IMG/VR virus record: IMGVR_UViG_3300036715_004471
Location: 382,542 to 446,541 of that record
Length of the DNA stretch: 64,000 nt
Direction: 5' to 3' (one strand)
The notes under the pieces are model-generated. The model was not told where the DNA came from, ran no database searches, and saw nothing but the letters and a program-made list of their open reading frames with translations. The position numbers and the translations under genes are program-made. Within the stretch, counting starts at the first letter, position 1; each line of letters starts with the position of its first letter. This document shows positions 8,287 through 43,608 of the stretch, in pieces.

Positions 8287-8574
8287 TTACTTAATGATAC
8301 AGAGGACCTGATCTTCTCTCAAAAGAAAATTAGAAACACCATCAACTTTAACTTCGGTCAAGAAGTTTTTATTGAAAGCCACTCTGTCACCAACACTAAC
8401 TTCTAGTGGAATTGATTTGCCGCTGGCATCCAATCTTCCACTACCAACTGCCAGTACCGTGCCAGTTGTAACTTTTTCCTCAGCAGTCTGGGGAACAAAT
8501 AACCCGCCGGCGGTTTGTGTTACTGGCTCATCTTTTGAAACAACTACGAAATCTCTTAGAGGTTGAACTGTCAT
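8287..8574 (-). CDS. groES: co-chaperonin GroES
   Basis: QPLRDFVVV, TAGGLFVP, GTVLAVGSG, VGDRV, LLREDQVL. Confidence 0.95.
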   Translation of the reverse strand: MTVQPLRDFVVVSKDEPVTQTAGGLFVPQTAEEKVTTGTVLAVGSGRLDASGKSIPLEVSVGDRVAFNKNFLTEVKVDGVSNFLLREDQVLCIIK

Positions 8575-8598
8575 AATATCTCCTGTACCACAAATATA

Positions 8599-9117
8599 TC
8601 ATTCGCTGTCTGCTTCGATGATTCTAATAAGTTGCTCAAAACAAAACTTTATCTTTTTTCTTTCGCAAGCATCATTAAACTTTATTTCAAATTGAAATTG
8701 TTTTTCATAGTCAGAGAAATCCATATTTTTTATTCGAAGAATTTGACAAGCTTGATTAATGATTTCTATCGGAATAGCTTTGTCTTCTTTGAGACATTCT
8801 TCTTTGGCTATATTAAGTACTTTAATTCTCAAATTATTGAAATACATTTTTTTGTATTTCAATAATTTGATTTCATCAAAATTGAATCCTTTAACATATT
8901 CAAAAAATGGTTTATTTCCTCTGCTATTGTTACATTCATAACAAGATACAGTTAAGTTGGTTGTATTGAAAGTTCCTCTTTTACTGTCGGGAACAATATG
9001 TTCCATAGTAATTGTTTCTGAAGTTAACAGTTTTTGACAATAACAACAAACTGGTCTGTCTCTGTTTACAACGTATTCTTTGATCTTTTTTTGTCTTTTA
9101 CGTTCCTGGGCGCCCAT
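8599..9117 (-). CDS. HNH endonuclease
   Basis: CCYC..TMEHIVP..NLTVSCYECN. Confidence 0.85.
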   Translation of the reverse strand: MGAQERKRQKKIKEYVVNRDRPVCCYCQKLLTSETITMEHIVPDSKRGTFNTTNLTVSCYECNNSRGNKPFFEYVKGFNFDEIKLLKYKKMYFNNLRIKVLNIAKEECLKEDKAIPIEIINQACQILRIKNMDFSDYEKQFQFEIKFNDACERKKIKFCFEQLIRIIEADSE

Positions 9118-9123
9118 AATACA

Positions 9124-9813
9124 TTAAACCTCGAGATGAAAACAATCATTTACATTCAGTAATCTCCATCCTTCGGGACCGAAATACAATCTAGTCACCG
9201 AAGTATTATCAATTTGAACTTTCCAGGTGAAACCTCTGTCAAATCCAGTAACGTATTGAAGCAGACATTTAATAGTCATGCCATGGCTAAAACATCCAAT
9301 ATTCAACATTGGTAGTTTATTAGCTTTTCTATAGTTGGCTTGTTCAATCATCTTGGGATTATATAGAATTTCATTTTCTACCCAAGCGGAAGATCTGCGC
9401 TCTACCATAGTAAAAGATTCTCCGTTGGGCGGCAAAAATGCTTGATTCAAATAGTTCATTTTTGCTTTAACAGTATCGGTCATTGTAGCAGATCGACTCG
9501 CGCCGGTCCAATCTCCTGCATCATATTCACGAATGTCAGGGACTACAATAATATCTTGATGAATGTCTGCACAAGCTAGTTTAGCAGTTTCTAATGCCCT
9601 ATCATAGCTTGACGAATAAACATAATCGAACTTCTCTCCTCTTTTAAGGAGTCTAAGACCTAAACGTCGCGCTTGATCTTTACCCTTTTCGGTCAGTTTA
9701 ACATGAGCCGTCTGTCCCATGATGTCAGGGGTCGCATTCACCTCAGATTCGCCATGACGAATCAGAGAAAGAATAAATTCATTATCTTGAATCATTCTGA
9801 GTTGTCCTTCCAA
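9124..9813 (-). CDS. histidine phosphatase (phosphoglycerate mutase family)
   Basis: IRHGES, SS..RALETA, GES, SHG, N..HL. Confidence 0.9.
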   Translation of the reverse strand: MEGQLRMIQDNEFILSLIRHGESEVNATPDIMGQTAHVKLTEKGKDQARRLGLRLLKRGEKFDYVYSSSYDRALETAKLACADIHQDIIVVPDIREYDAGDWTGASRSATMTDTVKAKMNYLNQAFLPPNGESFTMVERRSSAWVENEILYNPKMIEQANYRKANKLPMLNIGCFSHGMTIKCLLQYVTGFDRGFTWKVQIDNTSVTRLYFGPEGWRLLNVNDCFHLEV

Positions 9814-10183
9814 TAGTTAAATGGAAACCGTATCTTGGCTCTTTTGAAAGTCCATAATTTTCCCTTAAGTTTAACAAATAGGGACATTGAACCTTAAGCC
9901 AATAATACTCTCCGTTATCTTGTACTCCCCCTTCATATTCAAATTCAATTATTTTGTGTTCGTCCATCCTCCATAAATTGTAATTGGGAATTCTTTCTCC
10001 CCTAATAACGGAAATATGAGCACCCCATACTGGTCGGGTTAATTTCCCCAACCAAGGAGTCTCACTATAGAATAAGCTTCTGTAATATCGTGATATCTCA
10101 TCATCACACATGATTACTAACCACTTGTTGCTCGACGACAGATGGGTGCGCGGCGAATATACCATCTTACCAATAGATTTCAT
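9782..10183 (-). CDS. 2H phosphoesterase family protein
   Basis: Two HxS/T motifs: AHISV and FHLTI. Confidence 0.75.
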   Translation of the reverse strand: MKSIGKMVYSPRTHLSSSNKWLVIMCDDEISRYYRSLFYSETPWLGKLTRPVWGAHISVIRGERIPNYNLWRMDEHKIIEFEYEGGVQDNGEYYWLKVQCPYLLNLRENYGLSKEPRYGFHLTIGRTTQNDSR

Positions 10184-14538: not shown

Positions 14539-15480
14539 ATGCCTACTTTAAATCCGCCAAAATGTTTCAATTCAACTATGTCATCAAAACCTGGCACCGG
14601 ACCAGTACTAGTAAACAATGTTAACTATCCAGTAAATAGTATGTATACAAATAATACATATTTATGGGATGGCACTAATTGGTCAACAACATCTAGTAAT
14701 GTTATTGATGCATCCGGACCGCTTCCTACAAGACAAAATAGTTGTTCTTCTGAGTTTTTTGGTGCTTCTGGCACAAATCATAATACTGTAATGGTATTTG
14801 GTGGTCAAAGCAGCTCTTCTTTATTAAGAGACACATGGGTATTTGATGGGACTAGTTGGACAAACCCAACACAATCCGGGTCTCCTAGTGCAAGGTACTC
14901 AGCAGCTATGTCATGTGGTTTTTCCGCATTATCAAAAGTTTTGTTATTTGGTGGAAAAAATGAACATGATGTTTTGGGTGACACTTGGTTATGGGATGGA
15001 CATACTAATACATGGGCACAAAAAACACTTGACGTATCACCATCTGCCAGATATGGAGCCAAATTAGTGGGCGGAATTTCTGCTGGAAGAAACTCTATAT
15101 TATTTGGAGGCGCTAATAATTTTGAGCTTTTAAATGATACATTTAGATGGAATGATGCCGCAGAAACTTGGGTAAAATTAACCCCTACGCACTCACCATC
15201 AGCAAGATTTGACCATGTTATGGGAAAAGATGCCGCAAATAGTAACGTTATTGTATTATTTGGCGGATTAAATCAAGACTCTGTACTTTCAGATACATGG
15301 GTTTTTAATGGTACTGATTGGACACAACAGTCTCCCGCAAGTTCTCCATCTGCACGTTATGGCGCTCATATGAGTTATGATGTCACTTCAGGGGCATTAA
15401 TATTATTTGGTGGCACAAATGGATCCACAGTATTTAATGATACTTGGAAATGGACCGGCACAAATTGGGTTCAACTATAA
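14539..15480 (+). CDS. Kelch-repeat beta-propeller protein
   Basis: Repeated SPSAR....LFGG....DTW.WDG..W units. Confidence 0.9.
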   Translation: MPTLNPPKCFNSTMSSKPGTGPVLVNNVNYPVNSMYTNNTYLWDGTNWSTTSSNVIDASGPLPTRQNSCSSEFFGASGTNHNTVMVFGGQSSSSLLRDTWVFDGTSWTNPTQSGSPSARYSAAMSCGFSALSKVLLFGGKNEHDVLGDTWLWDGHTNTWAQKTLDVSPSARYGAKLVGGISAGRNSILFGGANNFELLNDTFRWNDAAETWVKLTPTHSPSARFDHVMGKDAANSNVIVLFGGLNQDSVLSDTWVFNGTDWTQQSPASSPSARYGAHMSYDVTSGALILFGGTNGSTVFNDTWKWTGTNWVQL

Positions 15481-26008: not shown

Positions 26009-26100
26009 TGGAGGAATGAGAGGGATTCGAACCCTCGGAACCCTTACGAGTCCACAACCTTTCCAGGGTTGCCGTTTCAGCCAAACTCACGCACCATTCC
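26009..26100 (-). tRNA. tRNA-Ser(GGA)
   Basis: Type II cloverleaf, loop CTGGAAA, CCA. Confidence 0.88.
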
Positions 26101-26560
26101 CTAATCTTCTTAAATAATGTTCTTCTGCATGACAATTAGGACATATCAATTCCAAATTATCTATATCATCAGAACCACCTTTTGATTTTTCTATTTTGTG
26201 ATGAATTTCCAAAATTTCTAGTTTTGAATAATTACATCTCTCACATTTATATCCTCGTAAATCAACTATTCTTTTTCTTAATTCACTAAGACTTTTTACT
26301 TTATCTTTTATTGGTCTTCCAGTTTTATATGTTGACCCAATTTTTTGTTTATTCGCACAAGCCCTACTACATGTTTTCTTATGTAAACCAGATTTAATTT
26401 GGTTATCACACATAGTGCATTTGTGTAATTTTTGCTGTGCTTTTCCCTTGCAATCATGAGAGCAATATACAGGACCTTTTGCTATTTGAAATGGTCTTCT
26501 ATAAATTTCCATAAAACAAACACTGCATGTACAATTTGGTTGACGTTGATATTTTTCCAT
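26087..26560 (-). CDS. HNH endonuclease with Zn-finger repeats
   Basis: LEIHHK..NLELICPNCH; stop codon inside tRNA-Ser. Confidence 0.9.
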   Translation of the reverse strand: MEKYQRQPNCTCSVCFMEIYRRPFQIAKGPVYCSHDCKGKAQQKLHKCTMCDNQIKSGLHKKTCSRACANKQKIGSTYKTGRPIKDKVKSLSELRKRIVDLRGYKCERCNYSKLEILEIHHKIEKSKGGSDDIDNLELICPNCHAEEHYLRRLGNGA

Positions 26561-26701: not shown

Positions 26702-26971
26702 TCACAAGAATGATTTCAGATTTATCATTCTTAACATACCGGACTCTTTGAGATTTTTTCCGTGAAGTCGGTAAGTTACACTACCATCACGATATTCGTA
26801 AGCAATAACATTATCTACTGGCGGATATCCACTACCATCATGTTCTCCATGAAAATAGATAACAATATTCCCACCTTGACTATGAAGTGTTCTACTTTTT
26901 ATTTCTTTACCATTAGTGGTACAAAAATTCAAAATATCTTTATGAAGAGGATAATTATCTTGAGTGTTCAT
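26702..26971 (-). CDS. small protein ending ..NLKSFL
   Basis: ORF. Confidence 0.6.
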   Translation of the reverse strand: MNTQDNYPLHKDILNFCTTNGKEIKSRTLHSQGGNIVIYFHGEHDGSGYPPVDNVIAYEYRDGSVTYRLHGKNLKESGMLRMINLKSFL

Positions 26972-27491
26972 GTAATTTTTTATTGGCTAAGTTGAAATTA
27001 TTAAATCTTTTATCAGAAGTTACCTCTTCCACAATTTTAAGGTACGGAGGCAACTCTACTTTTTGATTCTTATCTTCTAATTCAATTTCAAGAATAGCAA
27101 GTCCTTTTAAAGCACTTTTGAAAACATCTAGCTCAAAAACCTGCTCATTATATTTGAAAACAAATCTGGTTTTATCTATGGTGACTTTATCTGGATGAGA
27201 TTTTTGCAAATACTTCTCGTATTGCTTTTCAGAAATCTCATGTTCTTTTTCTTCGTTGACACCATCTTCAACAAAGACTTTCTTATTAAAATGATAAACC
27301 GTCTCTTTATCACCCGTCAAACCTTCGACGGTTTTACGAACTCTAGCAGAAGGCTCTTTACCTTCCGGTTTGAGATAAGTCTGACTGATTCTTTTTACAT
27401 CAACCAACTCATCAAACATTTCTGCTAACTCGGACCAGTAAGATGGAAAGTTAACCAAAAATTTTCTTTCTATTTCTAATTGTTTTGCCAT
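26955..27491 (-). CDS. CYTH domain protein (triphosphate tunnel metalloenzyme)
   Basis: EIERKFLV, QTYL, RVR, KTR, ELD, LEIEL. Confidence 0.88.
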   Translation of the reverse strand: MAKQLEIERKFLVNFPSYWSELAEMFDELVDVKRISQTYLKPEGKEPSARVRKTVEGLTGDKETVYHFNKKVFVEDGVNEEKEHEISEKQYEKYLQKSHPDKVTIDKTRFVFKYNEQVFELDVFKSALKGLAILEIELEDKNQKVELPPYLKIVEEVTSDKRFNNFNLANKKLHEHSR

Positions 27492-27555
27492 TTTTCCCTT
27501 TTGAAATGAGCAAGATGCTCTCTTCAAAAGGACCGAACAAACGGTCCGAAAACAC

Positions 27556-27912
27556 TCAGTCTTCTGAATCCTCAGTAGGTTCGACTAGAGCAATCGATGG
27601 GTCGCGGGCGACCGATACTGTTTTGGAAGTTGTGGACTTAGCTAATTTAGCTGGCTTTGCTGTCTTCACCCCCTTTATAACGCCACCGTTCTTACCACGG
27701 GTTACATAAGCAATATCGCTGTTGTGTACGAAGTGATTTACAAAACCTAGCACGTGCTTTGGCTCCATAGCTACAGCAAGTCCTACAGTTTGTGCCAACT
27801 CCTTCAACTGAAGTCTTTCGCCATCATTCATCGAATCAACAGTTGCATGCGTTGCTTCAAAAATTCTTTCTACGGTTTCCAACATATTAGAGATACTTTT
27901 ATTCTTACTCAT
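27556..27912 (-). CDS. hypothetical, possible winged-helix protein (paralog of 62068..62496)
   Basis: IFEAT..YVTRGKNGGV vs VFAAT..HVTRGAHGGI. Confidence 0.6.
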   Translation of the reverse strand: MSKNKSISNMLETVERIFEATHATVDSMNDGERLQLKELAQTVGLAVAMEPKHVLGFVNHFVHNSDIAYVTRGKNGGVIKGVKTAKPAKLAKSTTSKTVSVARDPSIALVEPTEDSED

Positions 27913-27963
27913 TCTTATTCTCCAAAATTGCGGCACCCAAATCGGCGCCATTTGATAAATGGA

Positions 27964-28596: not shown

Positions 28597-29136
28597 TTAT
28601 AGATTCCTTTTAAGGATATCCAGCTCTTCTGGAGAAAGTTTTTTCTTTAACTCACTCATCATCTTAATATCCTCAACAGATCTAAGAGCTTCTTTTTGTT
28701 TCTTCTTTTCTTTTTTCTCTTTTAATTGCAACTTACGCAATTTTTCTTTCTCATCAAACTTTTGTTTGCCCTCTATAAGTTCATCTTCAAAATCTTCAAA
28801 TAACCAACGAGATGGAAGAAGACCTTCATAAGACCATTCGGAACCATCTTTAAGCAAATAACTATATTCTTATATACCGCCATTACATTCAGTAACTATA
28901 GAATATATAGTATCGCCACTTATATGATTTCTTAAATTTCCTACTTCTCCTTCGGCAGCACCGTCAAAATACCAAGTACTTAACTTTGCTGACTCAAAAT
29001 CAAAAATAAAATTTAAAATATAATGTATACGATCAGTAATTTGTCCTTCTAATTCATCTGCTTCGCCTCGTTTTTGTTCCCAACGACTTGGCAAATCATT
29101 AGCTATTGGATCTATTTTTTCAATTGTTTTTTTCAT
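28597..29136 (-). CDS. hypothetical protein interrupted by in-frame TAA at 28870
   Basis: 28870..29136 and 28597..28857 are in the same frame (GGI*EYSYLLKDG). Confidence 0.5.
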
Positions 29137-29150
29137 AATTTTTATAAAAT

Positions 29151-29500
29151 GGAAGAGTTATTCTATAATCCGGGTTCTGTTATTTCAAACAATCATTAAT
29201 CTTGGCGAATAGTCACCTATTCGCTCCAGCACCAACCCGTAAACATCGGGCGAGTAACCCTCAAACGTTTACTATTTGGCTTGCTTCAAATGGGGTTTGC
29301 CGTGCCATGTTTGTTACCAAACATGCGGTGGGCTCTTACTCCACCATTTCACCCTTACCGGAAGCCGAAGCTTCTTAGGCGGTATCTTTCTGTTGCACTT
29401 TCCGTCGTGTCACCACGCCCAGCCGTTAACTGGCATTCTACTCTACGAAGCCCAGAATTTCCTCAGTCTTGCGACCGCGATTGCTCAAACAACTCTTTCC
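29151..29500 (-). ncRNA. rnpB: RNase P RNA (bacterial type A-like)
   Basis: GAGGAAATTCTGGGC, GGAAAGTGCAACAGAAA, AAGGGTGAAA, GGTAAC, AAACCCC..GAAGCAAG, ACAGAACCCGGATTAT; P1 GAGTTGTT/AATAACTC. Confidence 0.93.
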
Positions 29501-29814
29501 AAAGCTTTACGATAATGATGCGCTATTACATTTTTCAAATAAGAAAGAAATTTAGGAGGATAAGGCATTAGATCAATTCTAGACAAAATGTTGTCTCTTA
29601 CCAAAGATAACACGGGATTTTTAACTCTTCTATCAGAAATAACACTAATGCCTTTGAATTGGCAAGTAGCCATGTTGATAAAAGATAATACTCTATGTTT
29701 TTCGTAAGCGGGGATTAGATCTTGATTCATCAAATCCGCCAATACTTCACAAGCTTTGGTTCCGCCAAATGTATGCGGCTCTACATAAATGTATGTAGAC
29801 CAAGCCCTACTCAT
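29485..29814 (-). CDS. hypothetical protein
   Basis: ORF; stop overlaps 5' end of rnpB. Confidence 0.55.
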   Translation of the reverse strand: MSRAWSTYIYVEPHTFGGTKACEVLADLMNQDLIPAYEKHRVLSFINMATCQFKGISVISDRRVKNPVLSLVRDNILSRIDLMPYPPKFLSYLKNVIAHHYRKALERVV

Positions 29815-30520: not shown

Positions 30521-31081
30521 TTATTCCCAAATATCACACAAATAATCAATTAACTCATCTCCACTAAAAGGAAATGCAGTTGCTACTACATATTTTCTTT
30601 TGTAGTATTCGCTATCTATAGCCTGCTGACTATCTAGTTTATCTATTAGTTTCAGCTGTAACATACGACTATATTTGCCAGCACACCCTCTGGAACAGAA
30701 TGGACCGGCTTTATTTTTCTTAGCTTTATCTCTAATCAGTCTAGGACTACGTTCAAATTCCTTATCACACCATGCACAATTGAATTTAACCAATTTTACA
30801 CGACGAGTATCGTCTCCAGAATGCTGAGAGCGCTCAACTAATCTCAAATTATTGAGATCATTGTTTTCAAAATTGCTATCAATATGATCAACAGTTTCTA
30901 GATTAGGATCTAATTTCCTTCCTAAATGAAGTTCCATAATCCATTTAGGATAGGAAACGGTCCTTCTCTTGCCCTTACGATCCACAACAATTACTATTTG
31001 TCTTGAATCTCTACGGCGATAAGGTCCAAAAACTTTGAATTTATCTGCATATTCCATACCATTATATGGTTTTATATGCAT
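30521..31081 (-). CDS. HNH endonuclease
   Basis: TVDHIDSN..NDLNNL. Confidence 0.85.
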   Translation of the reverse strand: MHIKPYNGMEYADKFKVFGPYRRRDSRQIVIVVDRKGKRRTVSYPKWIMELHLGRKLDPNLETVDHIDSNFENNDLNNLRLVERSQHSGDDTRRVKLVKFNCAWCDKEFERSPRLIRDKAKKNKAGPFCSRGCAGKYSRMLQLKLIDKLDSQQAIDSEYYKRKYVVATAFPFSGDELIDYLCDIWE

Positions 31082-31271: not shown

Positions 31272-32189
31272 TCAATAATAGTAATAAGAATTATATTTTG
31301 GTCTCAGATTTTCTGGATAAGTTGGAGAACGCTCCAATACCTTGGTCTGAACCCACGCAGGCATAGAATTCCAGAAAACCATTTCTTTATCGTTCAACTT
31401 ACGATCTTGACGCAAAGATGGGATGCCGCCAGATTTCCAAACTGGTTTGTAACTAGTGATAACAAGAATGCCTTCTTTGTTCTTCTCATAGACTGGTTCA
31501 TCGTAAGAATACAAAAAAGAGAAACCATTGTACCAATTGTAAAAATTGTTACGGACATTGCCCCATTCGATTTTCCATTTACGATTGGTGCCGCCATATT
31601 TTTTGGTTTTGTTTGCGGGAACAAACCAAAACAACTTATCACCAACTTTTCCTACCATACGCCCGCTCAACCAATTAGCAACAGCTTGAGTGTTGAACTT
31701 GGGAGTCTTGGGGTGACGAGGGCGCATGATCTTGGCGCGCAAAACGCCACCATCATCCACATAAAAATCGTTCTCGTAATTGGTGGTGATGTAATCTTCT
31801 TCGCTTTTGTAGAAACGACCAAATCTCAGATCTGGAACTTCTTCCACAGAAGAGAGCAAATGATCATAAAGAATGTGACGACCTGCGGTGGTGCGAGAAT
31901 CGAATTTCTTGCAAACATCGGATTTCACATCATTCCAAAGTCGACCAACCTGACAATGAAGCCAACGATACATAGGACCGAGCTTATCATCAAATTCCTT
32001 ACGAACTTTTTCTTTTTTGGTGATGACAATATTATCTTCATCAGAAAAATCTGGATTATCTTTCAAGAAGTGACAGTAATCTCTTTCAGAGGCTCTTTCA
32101 ACAGTGAAGGAATTACGACGTTCCCACTTGTTGAAACGAGCGCGACCACCCTCGATGGTGGTTTTAGCAAGATTCTTTTTAGACATAAC
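31272..32189 (-). CDS. hypothetical protein
   Basis: Long ORF co-oriented with neighbours; GGAG RBS before MSKK. Confidence 0.7.
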   Translation of the reverse strand, partial: VMSKKNLAKTTIEGGRARFNKWERRNSFTVERASERDYCHFLKDNPDFSDEDNIVITKKEKVRKEFDDKLGPMYRWLHCQVGRLWNDVKSDVCKKFDSRTTAGRHILYDHLLSSVEEVPDLRFGRFYKSEEDYITTNYENDFYVDDGGVLRAKIMRPRHPKTPKFNTQAVANWLSGRMVGKVGDKLFWFVPANKTKKYGGTNRKWKIEWGNVRNNFYNWYNGFSFLYSYDEPVYEKNKEGILVITSYKPVWKSGGIPSLRQDRKLNDKEMVFWNSMPAWVQTKVLERSPTYPENLRPKYNSYYYY

Positions 32190-32211
32190 ATTCTCCAGTG
32201 GAGACAAATTT

Positions 32212-35018: not shown

Positions 35019-35100
35019 TGGTGGATTTGGAGAGAATCGAACTCTCAAACTCTGAAACTCTGAATGCAAATCAGAAATTATCCCATTTAATTACAAGCCC
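35019..35100 (-). tRNA. tRNA-Ala(TGC), atypical (8-nt duplication in variable region)
   Basis: G3:U70, loop TTTGCAT, AAACTCTG tandem repeat, CCA. Confidence 0.65.
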
Positions 35101-35304: not shown

Positions 35305-35389
35305 TGGTGGATCTGGAGGGACTCGAACCCGCGTAGGCTTTCGCCGAGAGCTTAAAAGGCTCTTGTCATTGCCGCTAGACAACAAATCC
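35305..35389 (-). tRNA. tRNA with Lys anticodon (TTT) and long variable arm
   Basis: AGAGC-CTTTTAA-GCTCT, V-arm GGC-GAAA-GCC, CCA. Confidence 0.8.
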
Positions 35390-37017: not shown

Positions 37018-37092
37018 TGGTTGCAGTGGAGGGAATCGGACCCCCTTCTCGTTCTTATAATGAAATGTAATCCTTCACAGGCATTTGTTTCA
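37018..37092 (-). ncRNA. chimeric Y-RNA 5' half / tRNA 3' half
   Basis: AATGC..AAGGATTACAT followed by T arm and CACTGCA-ACCA. Confidence 0.5.
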
Positions 37093-38405: not shown

Positions 38406-38410
38406 GTTAT

Positions 38411-38504
38411 TGTGGATACACAGGGAATCGAACCCTACGCTAGCCTGCTTTCGACTCCTTTCTACCCACCTTGGTAGGTGGACAATGGCGGGCTCTCTAT
38501 ACCC
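38411..38504 (-). ncRNA. D-armless tRNA-like RNA with G3:U70
   Basis: GGGTATA/TGTATCC acceptor, T arm, long central stem. Confidence 0.55.
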
Positions 38505-38508
38505 AAGT

Positions 38509-38586
38509 TGGTGGACACATTGGGAGTCGAACCCAATTTTTCCCGACAATTGTCCGAGCTTTTCATAGGGACGGGTTACTGTGCCC
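38509..38586 (-). ncRNA. D-armless tRNA-like RNA with G3:U70, A73-CCA
   Basis: GGGCACA/TGTGTCC-ACCA, TTGGG-TTCGACT-CCCAA. Confidence 0.6.
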
Positions 38587-41234: not shown

Positions 41235-41310
41235 ATCAAAATACGTCAGGAATCGAACCTGAACTGTGGGGTGATTACCCCAATCCTGCCCTTAGACGAC
41301 ATATTTTGAT
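41235..41310 (-). ncRNA. tRNA-like RNA with extended closing stem, 6-nt loop, no CCA
   Basis: ATCAAAATATG/CGTATTTTGAT, TGGGG-TAATCA-CCCCA, TCAGG-TTCGATT-CCTGA. Confidence 0.55.
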
Positions 41311-41389: not shown

Positions 41390-41465
41390 TTGACGACAAA
41401 ATGAAATAAGTTATTTTGATTCGGTTTATAAGACTGAAATGTAAACCTAATTTCTCATTCGTCAA
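41390..41465 (-). ncRNA. short Y-RNA-like module
   Basis: TTGACG-AATGA..AGG-TTTACAT..ATTTTGT-CGTCAA. Confidence 0.7.
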
Positions 41466-41563: not shown

Positions 41564-41648
41564 TGGCGGATCTGGAGAGACTCGAACTCTCGATGGGTTT
41601 CCCCGACTGGTTAAGAGCCAGCTGTTATTGCCACTAAACGACAGATCC
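41564..41648 (-). tRNA. tRNA with Lys anticodon (CTT) and long variable arm
   Basis: GCTGG-CTCTTAA-CCAGT, V-arm GGG-GAAA-CCC, G73-CCA. Confidence 0.82.
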
Positions 41649-42333: not shown

Positions 42334-42386
42334 ATCTATATTGTTTCATTCCCGCATCAAAAAGCGCAGAAACAATTAAACTGCCT

Positions 42387-42473
42387 TGGTCCCCCATAGT
42401 GGAATCGAACCACATAGCACATAGGCACTCGTTTTACAGACGAGGGATCCTCCCAGGGATCTAGTTACAGGGG
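42387..42473 (-). tRNA. tRNA-Tyr(GTA), atypical C1:G72
   Basis: CTCGT-CTGTAAA-ACGAG, CCA. Confidence 0.75.
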
Positions 42474-42562: not shown

Positions 42563-42619
42563 GCTGACAAAAATTGATAAGTTTTTACAACCCAAATGTA
42601 AACCTATCGAGCATTCAGC
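42563..42619 (-). ncRNA. minimal Y-RNA-like module
   Basis: GCTG-AATGC-TCGATAGG-TTTACAT..CTTATC-AATTTTTGT-CAGC. Confidence 0.7.
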
Positions 42620-42747: not shown

Positions 42748-42809
42748 GACGACAAAAATTGAATAAGATGTTGTTTATCCTAAAATGTAATCCTATTCTA
42801 GCATTCGTC
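42748..42809 (-). ncRNA. minimal Y-RNA-like module
   Basis: GACG-AATGC-TAGAATAGG-ATTACAT..CTTATTC-AATTTTTGT-CGTC. Confidence 0.7.
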
Positions 42810-43530: not shown

Positions 43531-43608
43531 TGGTTGCGGGGGCTGGAGTCGAACCAACTATTACAAGGCTTATGAGACCTGTGTGATATTCCGTTTCACT
43601 CTCCCACA
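43531..43608 (-). tRNA. tRNA-Met(CAT)
   Basis: Loop CTCATAA, CCA. Confidence 0.85.

Follow-up and report, generated by a model that had tools for sequence, protein, structure and literature searches.

Does a huge phage bring its own catalyst for tRNA maturation? The question arises from the window analyzed here, a stretch of 64,000 nucleotides that forms the last 64 kb of a 446,541-bp IMG/VR record (IMGVR_UViG_3300036715_004471, positions 382,542 to 446,541), and to which all coordinates refer unless stated otherwise. An earlier note, made from the sequence alone, proposed that positions 29151-29500 hold a virus-encoded RNase P RNA with a compensatory change in its catalytic P4 helix. We confirm this. 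The record encodes a complete, well-conserved copy of the ribozyme that trims the 5' ends of tRNAs, but not its protein partner, and the gene sits among more than 50 phage tRNA genes built as ideal RNase P substrates, so the phage probably carries its own tRNA-maturation catalyst. Catalysis itself is inferred.

Identity of the RNA and its P4 helix

A covariance-model search of the window against Rfam gives one RNase P hit, RF00010 (RNaseP_bact_a), at 29150-29496 on the minus strand, with 288.2 bits against a gathering score of 100, an E-value of 3.4e-93, and model positions 1-367 of 367 matched without truncation. It is the only copy in the record. The earlier note had the span right to within a few bases, but the RNA is the reverse complement of the plus strand. 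As delimited by the model the RNA is 347 nt long with a GC content of 48%, although its true extent may be 357 nt (29148-29504, minus strand), with P1 extended by about four pairs (5' cuuUGGAa / UCCAuu 3'). This longer extent is inferred; the "uuuggaa" 5' flank is also present in a distant relative, L053, described below.

The two P4 strands read GAGGAAAUUCUGGGCU (29464-29449) and ACAGAACCCGGAUUA (29180-29166). Alignment with an annotated E. coli rnpB (L092:241-617), in which GAGGAAAGUCCGGG starts at position 61 and ACAGAACCCGGCUUA at 347, fixes the numbering: G68 has become U (29457), C71 has become U (29454), and C358 has become A (29169), whereas U69 (29456) and G356 are unchanged. The 5' strand (E. 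coli A66-G74) is therefore AAUUCUGGG at 29451-29459 and the 3' strand (E. coli C353-U360) is CCCGGAUU at 29167-29174, both on the minus strand. P4 keeps eight pairs (A-U, A-U, U-A, C-G, U.G, G-C, G-C, G-C), of which U68-A358 and U71.G356 are non-canonical for the family, and U69 stays bulged. Rfam's structure line does not mark P4 or P6 as pairs, so the high score does not reward this compensation; the pairing was checked by eye and is independent of the score.

All helices of the model are matched, and the P6 pseudoknot is present between GAGU (29440-29443, E. coli 82-85) and ACUC in the P17 loop (29252-29255, E. coli 276-279). The alignment with E. coli keeps the T-loop-binding adenosines, A129/A130, A232-A234, the J18/2 AGA, A248/A249 in J5/15 (29281-29282), and the GGU motif of the P15/16 loop (G292 G293 U294; 29235-29237). 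According to PMC11221534, A248 contacts the N-1 nucleotide of the leader and the GGU motif pairs with the 3' RCC of pre-tRNA. G332 is U throughout the phage clade, a change reported to be kinetically like wild type (PMC11221534). P3, on the other hand, is reduced to a short hairpin of about 4-5 pairs. In addition, G68 and U69 form the P4 metal site, and the neighboring C70U wobble mutation lowers E. coli kc about 30-fold in Mg2+ (PMC11221534), so U68/U71 could lower or alter activity.

Could the P4 variant have come from a bacterium? Among one genome for each of 185,579 prokaryotic species, the pattern with both U68 and U71 was found in none, and U68 with any base at 71 was found in 17. As the pattern requires AAGGGTGAAA 80-110 nt downstream, these counts are lower bounds. 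All 17 are genuine RNase P RNAs with C71 from MAGs, and those with a named taxon are Zixibacteria, Fibrobacteraceae, Krumholzibacteriota, or Gemmatimonadaceae. Position 358 could be read in 13 of them and was A in 12 and G in 1, so the U-A pair is a rare natural variant that works in cellular RNase P. These RNAs are 366-400 nt long, with 61-73% GC, are only 58-63% identical to the phage RNA, and do not group with it in a tree. The shared pair is therefore convergent and is not a clue to the donor. A metagenome scan for the variant P4 gave only two hits, both chance matches inside protein-coding sequence with no RNase P score even at E 0.01.

Phage location and inheritance of the gene

CheckV rates the record as 100% complete, whereas IMG/VR classes it as "provirus," which raises the possibility that the gene is bacterial DNA from a host flank, an integration-site copy, or a chimeric assembly. 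The record encodes a portal (1.9e-52), a large terminase (9.9e-58), an SbcC-like nuclease, a tail sheath, a prohead protease, DnaB-like and DNA helicases, and a weak match to PhuZ tubulin. Pfam Terminase_6N missed the large terminase of this record and scored in only one of five other large records, so it is too insensitive for these phages. From 130 kb to the end the record has 32-37% GC, with nearly all long open reading frames (ORFs) on the minus strand. Table 11 fits the ORFs, and recoding a stop codon did not lengthen the longest ones appreciably, although two tRNA genes at record positions 15230-15303 and 320811-320884 have a CUA anticodon (amber suppressors, labeled "Pyl" by ARAGORN).

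The RNase P RNA gene lies 35 kb inside the record, in a low-GC, single-strand array of tRNA genes, ORFans, an HNH endonuclease, and a SIMPL/DUF541 protein. Upstream lies an ORF of 109 aa (29485-29814, minus strand), whose stop codon is 10-12 nt inside the RNA. Downstream, the ATG of an 88-aa ORF (28870-29136, minus strand) lies 14 nt after the RNA's 3' end with no terminator between them. In relatives (a contig from run X6, and L028) the sequence at 28836-29146 is swapped for unrelated sequence of similar length, while the RNA and the upstream genes stay colinear. No convincing promoter or terminator flanks the gene; a sigma-70-like site at 29538-29509 on the minus strand scores 9 of 12, which is no better than shuffled sequence, and its -10 box is degraded in L028 and L036.

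One part of the record remains unexplained. A block at record positions 20,000-130,000 has 43-59% GC and genes on both strands, inside an otherwise 32-39% GC, one-strand phage genome. Its recognizable genes are phage-type, including several COOH-NH2 ligase paralogues, an amidoligase with a LysM domain, an HNH endonuclease, and a helicase, and it carries tRNA genes without encoded CCA. It does not look like host chromosome, but a chimeric assembly is not excluded.

A scan of IMG/VR for the variant P4 16-mer found 16 contigs, four of which carry the RNase P RNA. One contig, L033, is 100% identical to the window over 12.9 kb. Two others, L028 (94 kb) and L036 (33.6 kb), each differ from the window at 5 of 347 positions (six sites between them), while their flanks are 84-89% identical; at the flank divergence of 11-15%, about 40-50 differences would be expected. 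All six variable positions lie in helices and keep pairing. P9 changes U-A to U.G, P14 changes A-U to G.U, and P18 has a G-C to A-U exchange as well as an A-U that becomes G.U in L028 and G-C in L036.

Two deeper relatives, L056 (a 268-kb contig) and L053, turned up in a scan for the canonical P4. Their RNAs are 71-73% identical to that of the window, group with it in a tree, and sit in the same gene order. Homologues of window ORFs 31272-32207, 30521-31081 (HNH), 29485-29814, 27556-27951, 26955-27527, and 26087-26560 flank the L056 copy at 43-76% amino-acid identity. RNAalifold on the five RNAs predicts 102 pairs, and 24 of them have changes on both sides that keep the pair. The P6 pseudoknot, which neither the model nor RNAalifold scores, also covaries, being GAGU/ACUC in the window and GGAC/GUCC in L056 and L053. 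As both have the canonical G68-C358 and C71, the double transversion happened inside the phage lineage. A metatranscriptome contig from run X20, 95.5% identical to the window RNA, has C at 29454 (C71), which suggests that U71 came after U68-A358.

Taken with the virion genes, these relatives make it very unlikely that the gene is bacterial DNA. For it speak the "provirus" label, the odd 46-59% GC block, and the fact that many canonical-P4 hits in IMG/VR lie at contig ends, as expected for proviruses next to a host rnpB. Against it, the same RNA sits in the same gene order in L028, L036, L033, L056, and L053, which come from other samples, the record of L056 also has a terminase match, and none of the 17 U68 genomes is more than 63% identical. 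Equally improbable is a decaying or neutral passenger copy, despite the lack of a phage rnpA and the unusual substitutions in the most conserved helix. The RNA is 98.6% identical where the flanks are 85-89% identical, every substitution preserves pairing, the 24 compensatory pairs span 27-29% divergence, and the full model is matched. The proposal in the earlier note that the RNA is functional is thus much stronger now.

Protein partner, substrates, and expression

The earlier note saw no rnpA in the window, and this holds for the whole record: a six-frame PF00825 search at E<=10 found nothing, while 10 of 14 control genomes scored. The 109-aa upstream ORF is unlikely to be a substitute protein cofactor. 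It has no Pfam or PHROG match, and although L056 has a homologue at 48% identity directly upstream of its RNase P RNA, a different ORF takes its place in L053. The simplest inference is that the RNA uses the host's RnpA. A tblastn search of the tail sheath against cultured phages found only remote hits at 29% identity, so no host can be inferred and no RnpA partner can be named.

ARAGORN finds 56 tRNA genes in the record, of which 38 lie in the window between 10764 and 44059, all on the strand of the RNA; these are its presumed substrates. Further copies of the tRNA 3'-half repeat at 37018-37043, 38410-38435, 38509-38534, 42386-42411, and 43531-43556 were not called, so there are probably more tRNA-like elements than the 38 listed. 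A short repeated motif (..AAATGTAAaCCTA..; families D9 and D12) recurs between tRNA genes at 37055-37088, 41424-41449, 42581-42606, and 42770-42808. We could not identify the "Y modules" that the earlier note thought the RNA might release.

Of the 50 tRNA genes outside the high-GC block, 46 encode 3' CCA, 42 have U at -1 (p 2e-14 against base composition), and 44 have A at -2 (p 3e-15). U(-1), A(-2), and pairing of RCC with G292-U294 are the optimal features for the bacterial enzyme (PMC11221534). Unusual genes (35305-35389, 41564-41648, 35019-35100, and 41237-41307) include tRNA-Lys(UUU) and tRNA-Lys(CUU) genes of 85 nt with long, class-II-like variable arms, an 82-nt tRNA-Ala(UGC), and one tRNA-like gene with a 6-nt anticodon loop. 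The unusual tRNAs keep normal acceptor and T arms, which is what RNase P reads. Elsewhere, the genome encodes an RtcB RNA ligase (record positions 8543-10075; PF01139, 1.6e-92) and a CCA-adding-type nucleotidyltransferase (260626-261018; PF01743, 8e-15), which together with the RNase P RNA form a tRNA repair and maturation kit.

An alternative is that the RNA folds like RNase P but that its main role is not bulk tRNA 5' maturation. It might act as a decoy that captures host RnpA and starves the host enzyme, or as a variant with altered metal or substrate specificity that acts on particular phage RNAs, such as mRNA punctuation at tRNA-like elements. Without a phage rnpA it must compete with the host RNA for RnpA, and many tRNA and tRNA-like elements lie between ORFs on one strand. 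In addition, the P4 changes lie next to the metal site (G68/U69; PMC11221534). We nevertheless consider this alternative unlikely, because all known substrate-binding nucleotides are kept, the phage tRNA genes carry the canonical optimal signature, and the distant clade members have a canonical P4, so that the family-wide function does not depend on the variant.

Is the RNA made? No RNA run contains the whole of the 2.2-kb stretch that was queried. With the RNA alone as query, three RNA runs (one of them only guessed to be RNA) contain 22-28% of its sampled words and 13 others contain 9-13%. When contigs from three soil metatranscriptome studies were aligned to the stretch, most matches were short pieces of the universally conserved core from other organisms. 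Three contigs, however (run X18 record 1, run X19 record 9, and run X20 record 17), are 95.5-98% identical over variable helices and carry lineage-specific P18 variants, and no contig lies on either flank. This fits a stable, discrete RNA, although the depth is only 2-8 and carried-over DNA cannot be excluded.

The X20 contig (334 nt) joins 29504 directly to 29148 on the same strand. These positions are the ends of a P1 helix that can be extended by about four pairs, and joining them would cap P1 with a UUCUU loop. This could reflect a circular RNA, a reverse-transcription or ligation artefact that marks the true ends, or a tandem copy in that relative's DNA. The 20-mer spanning the junction is absent from IMG/VR, which is a weak negative because the relative's sequence differs, and no RNase III gene (PF00636) is present that could process an extended P1. 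It is a speculative possibility, and a doubtful one, that the RNA is released as a discrete species of about 357 nt and closed into a circle, possibly by the phage's own RtcB, as a nuclease-resistant, phage-specific ribozyme that takes over tRNA maturation during infection. The same reading would make RNase P RNA a recurrent but so far undescribed component of huge-phage tRNA arrays.

RNase P RNA in other viral records and its meaning

The canonical-P4 pattern occurs in 34 IMG/VR contigs. Six hits are in contigs of 162-497 kb, namely L056 and five further records in several other lineages: L048 (162 kb), L045 (168.6 kb, with direct terminal repeats), L072 (190 kb), L040 (372 kb), and L071 (497 kb). 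In five of the six loci (L040, L045, L048, L056, and L072) the scan also found tRNA genes, from one to about thirty. The five further records, viral according to IMG/VR, have a canonical P4 and, where computed (L048, L072, L040, and L071), a GC content of 62-71%; apart from L040/L071, they fall in other parts of the tree. In L048 (727-1224) tRNA genes on the same strand abut the RNA on both sides, and in L072 (462-1021) one abuts its 5' end and the next lies about 60 nt past its 3' end, so tRNA processing would free at least one end of the RNA. No rnpA was found at E<=1 in eight other large viral records that carry RNase P RNA, nor in two short fragments.

The earlier note held that such RNAs are reported in some huge phages but are rare. 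We found no paper that describes a phage-encoded RNase P RNA, which is not proof that none exists. Two jumbo-phage reviews do not mention it, and neither does the 2020 survey of huge phages (Al-Shayeb et al. 2020, PMC7162821), which reported tRNA sets, tmRNA/SmpB, and aminoacyl-tRNA synthetases but annotated RNAs only with tRNAscan and ARAGORN. Surveys of this kind would have missed this class of gene. As an RNA, the molecule belongs to a known family; as a viral gene, it appears to be undescribed.

We are fairly confident that this is a functional RNase P ribozyme gene carried by a huge tailed phage, inherited vertically within its clade, and transcribed on the same strand as the surrounding small ORFs and tRNA genes. 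The RNA most likely assembles with the host's RnpA into a hybrid holoenzyme, which would cut the 5' leaders off the phage's 50-plus tRNA precursors, many of which lie between ORFs in what appear to be polycistronic transcripts. There is no biochemical evidence of cleavage, and the host protein partner and the benefit to the phage, which could be extra processing capacity or independence from the host during infection, are likewise inferred.

RNase P is a universal, essential ribozyme that has been treated as a cellular (and organellar) gene. A phage clade that keeps a complete copy under strong purifying selection, without the protein subunit, extends the list of translation-apparatus parts that huge phages carry to a catalytic RNA, and implies a hybrid enzyme made of a viral RNA and a host protein. 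It also provides a natural experiment in the catalytic P4 helix, with a double transversion at the G68 metal-site pair plus a wobble at position 71, and with the intermediate and ancestral states available in relatives. The coherent substrate signature in about 50 phage tRNA genes (A-2, U-1, and encoded CCA) suggests co-adaptation of enzyme and substrates.
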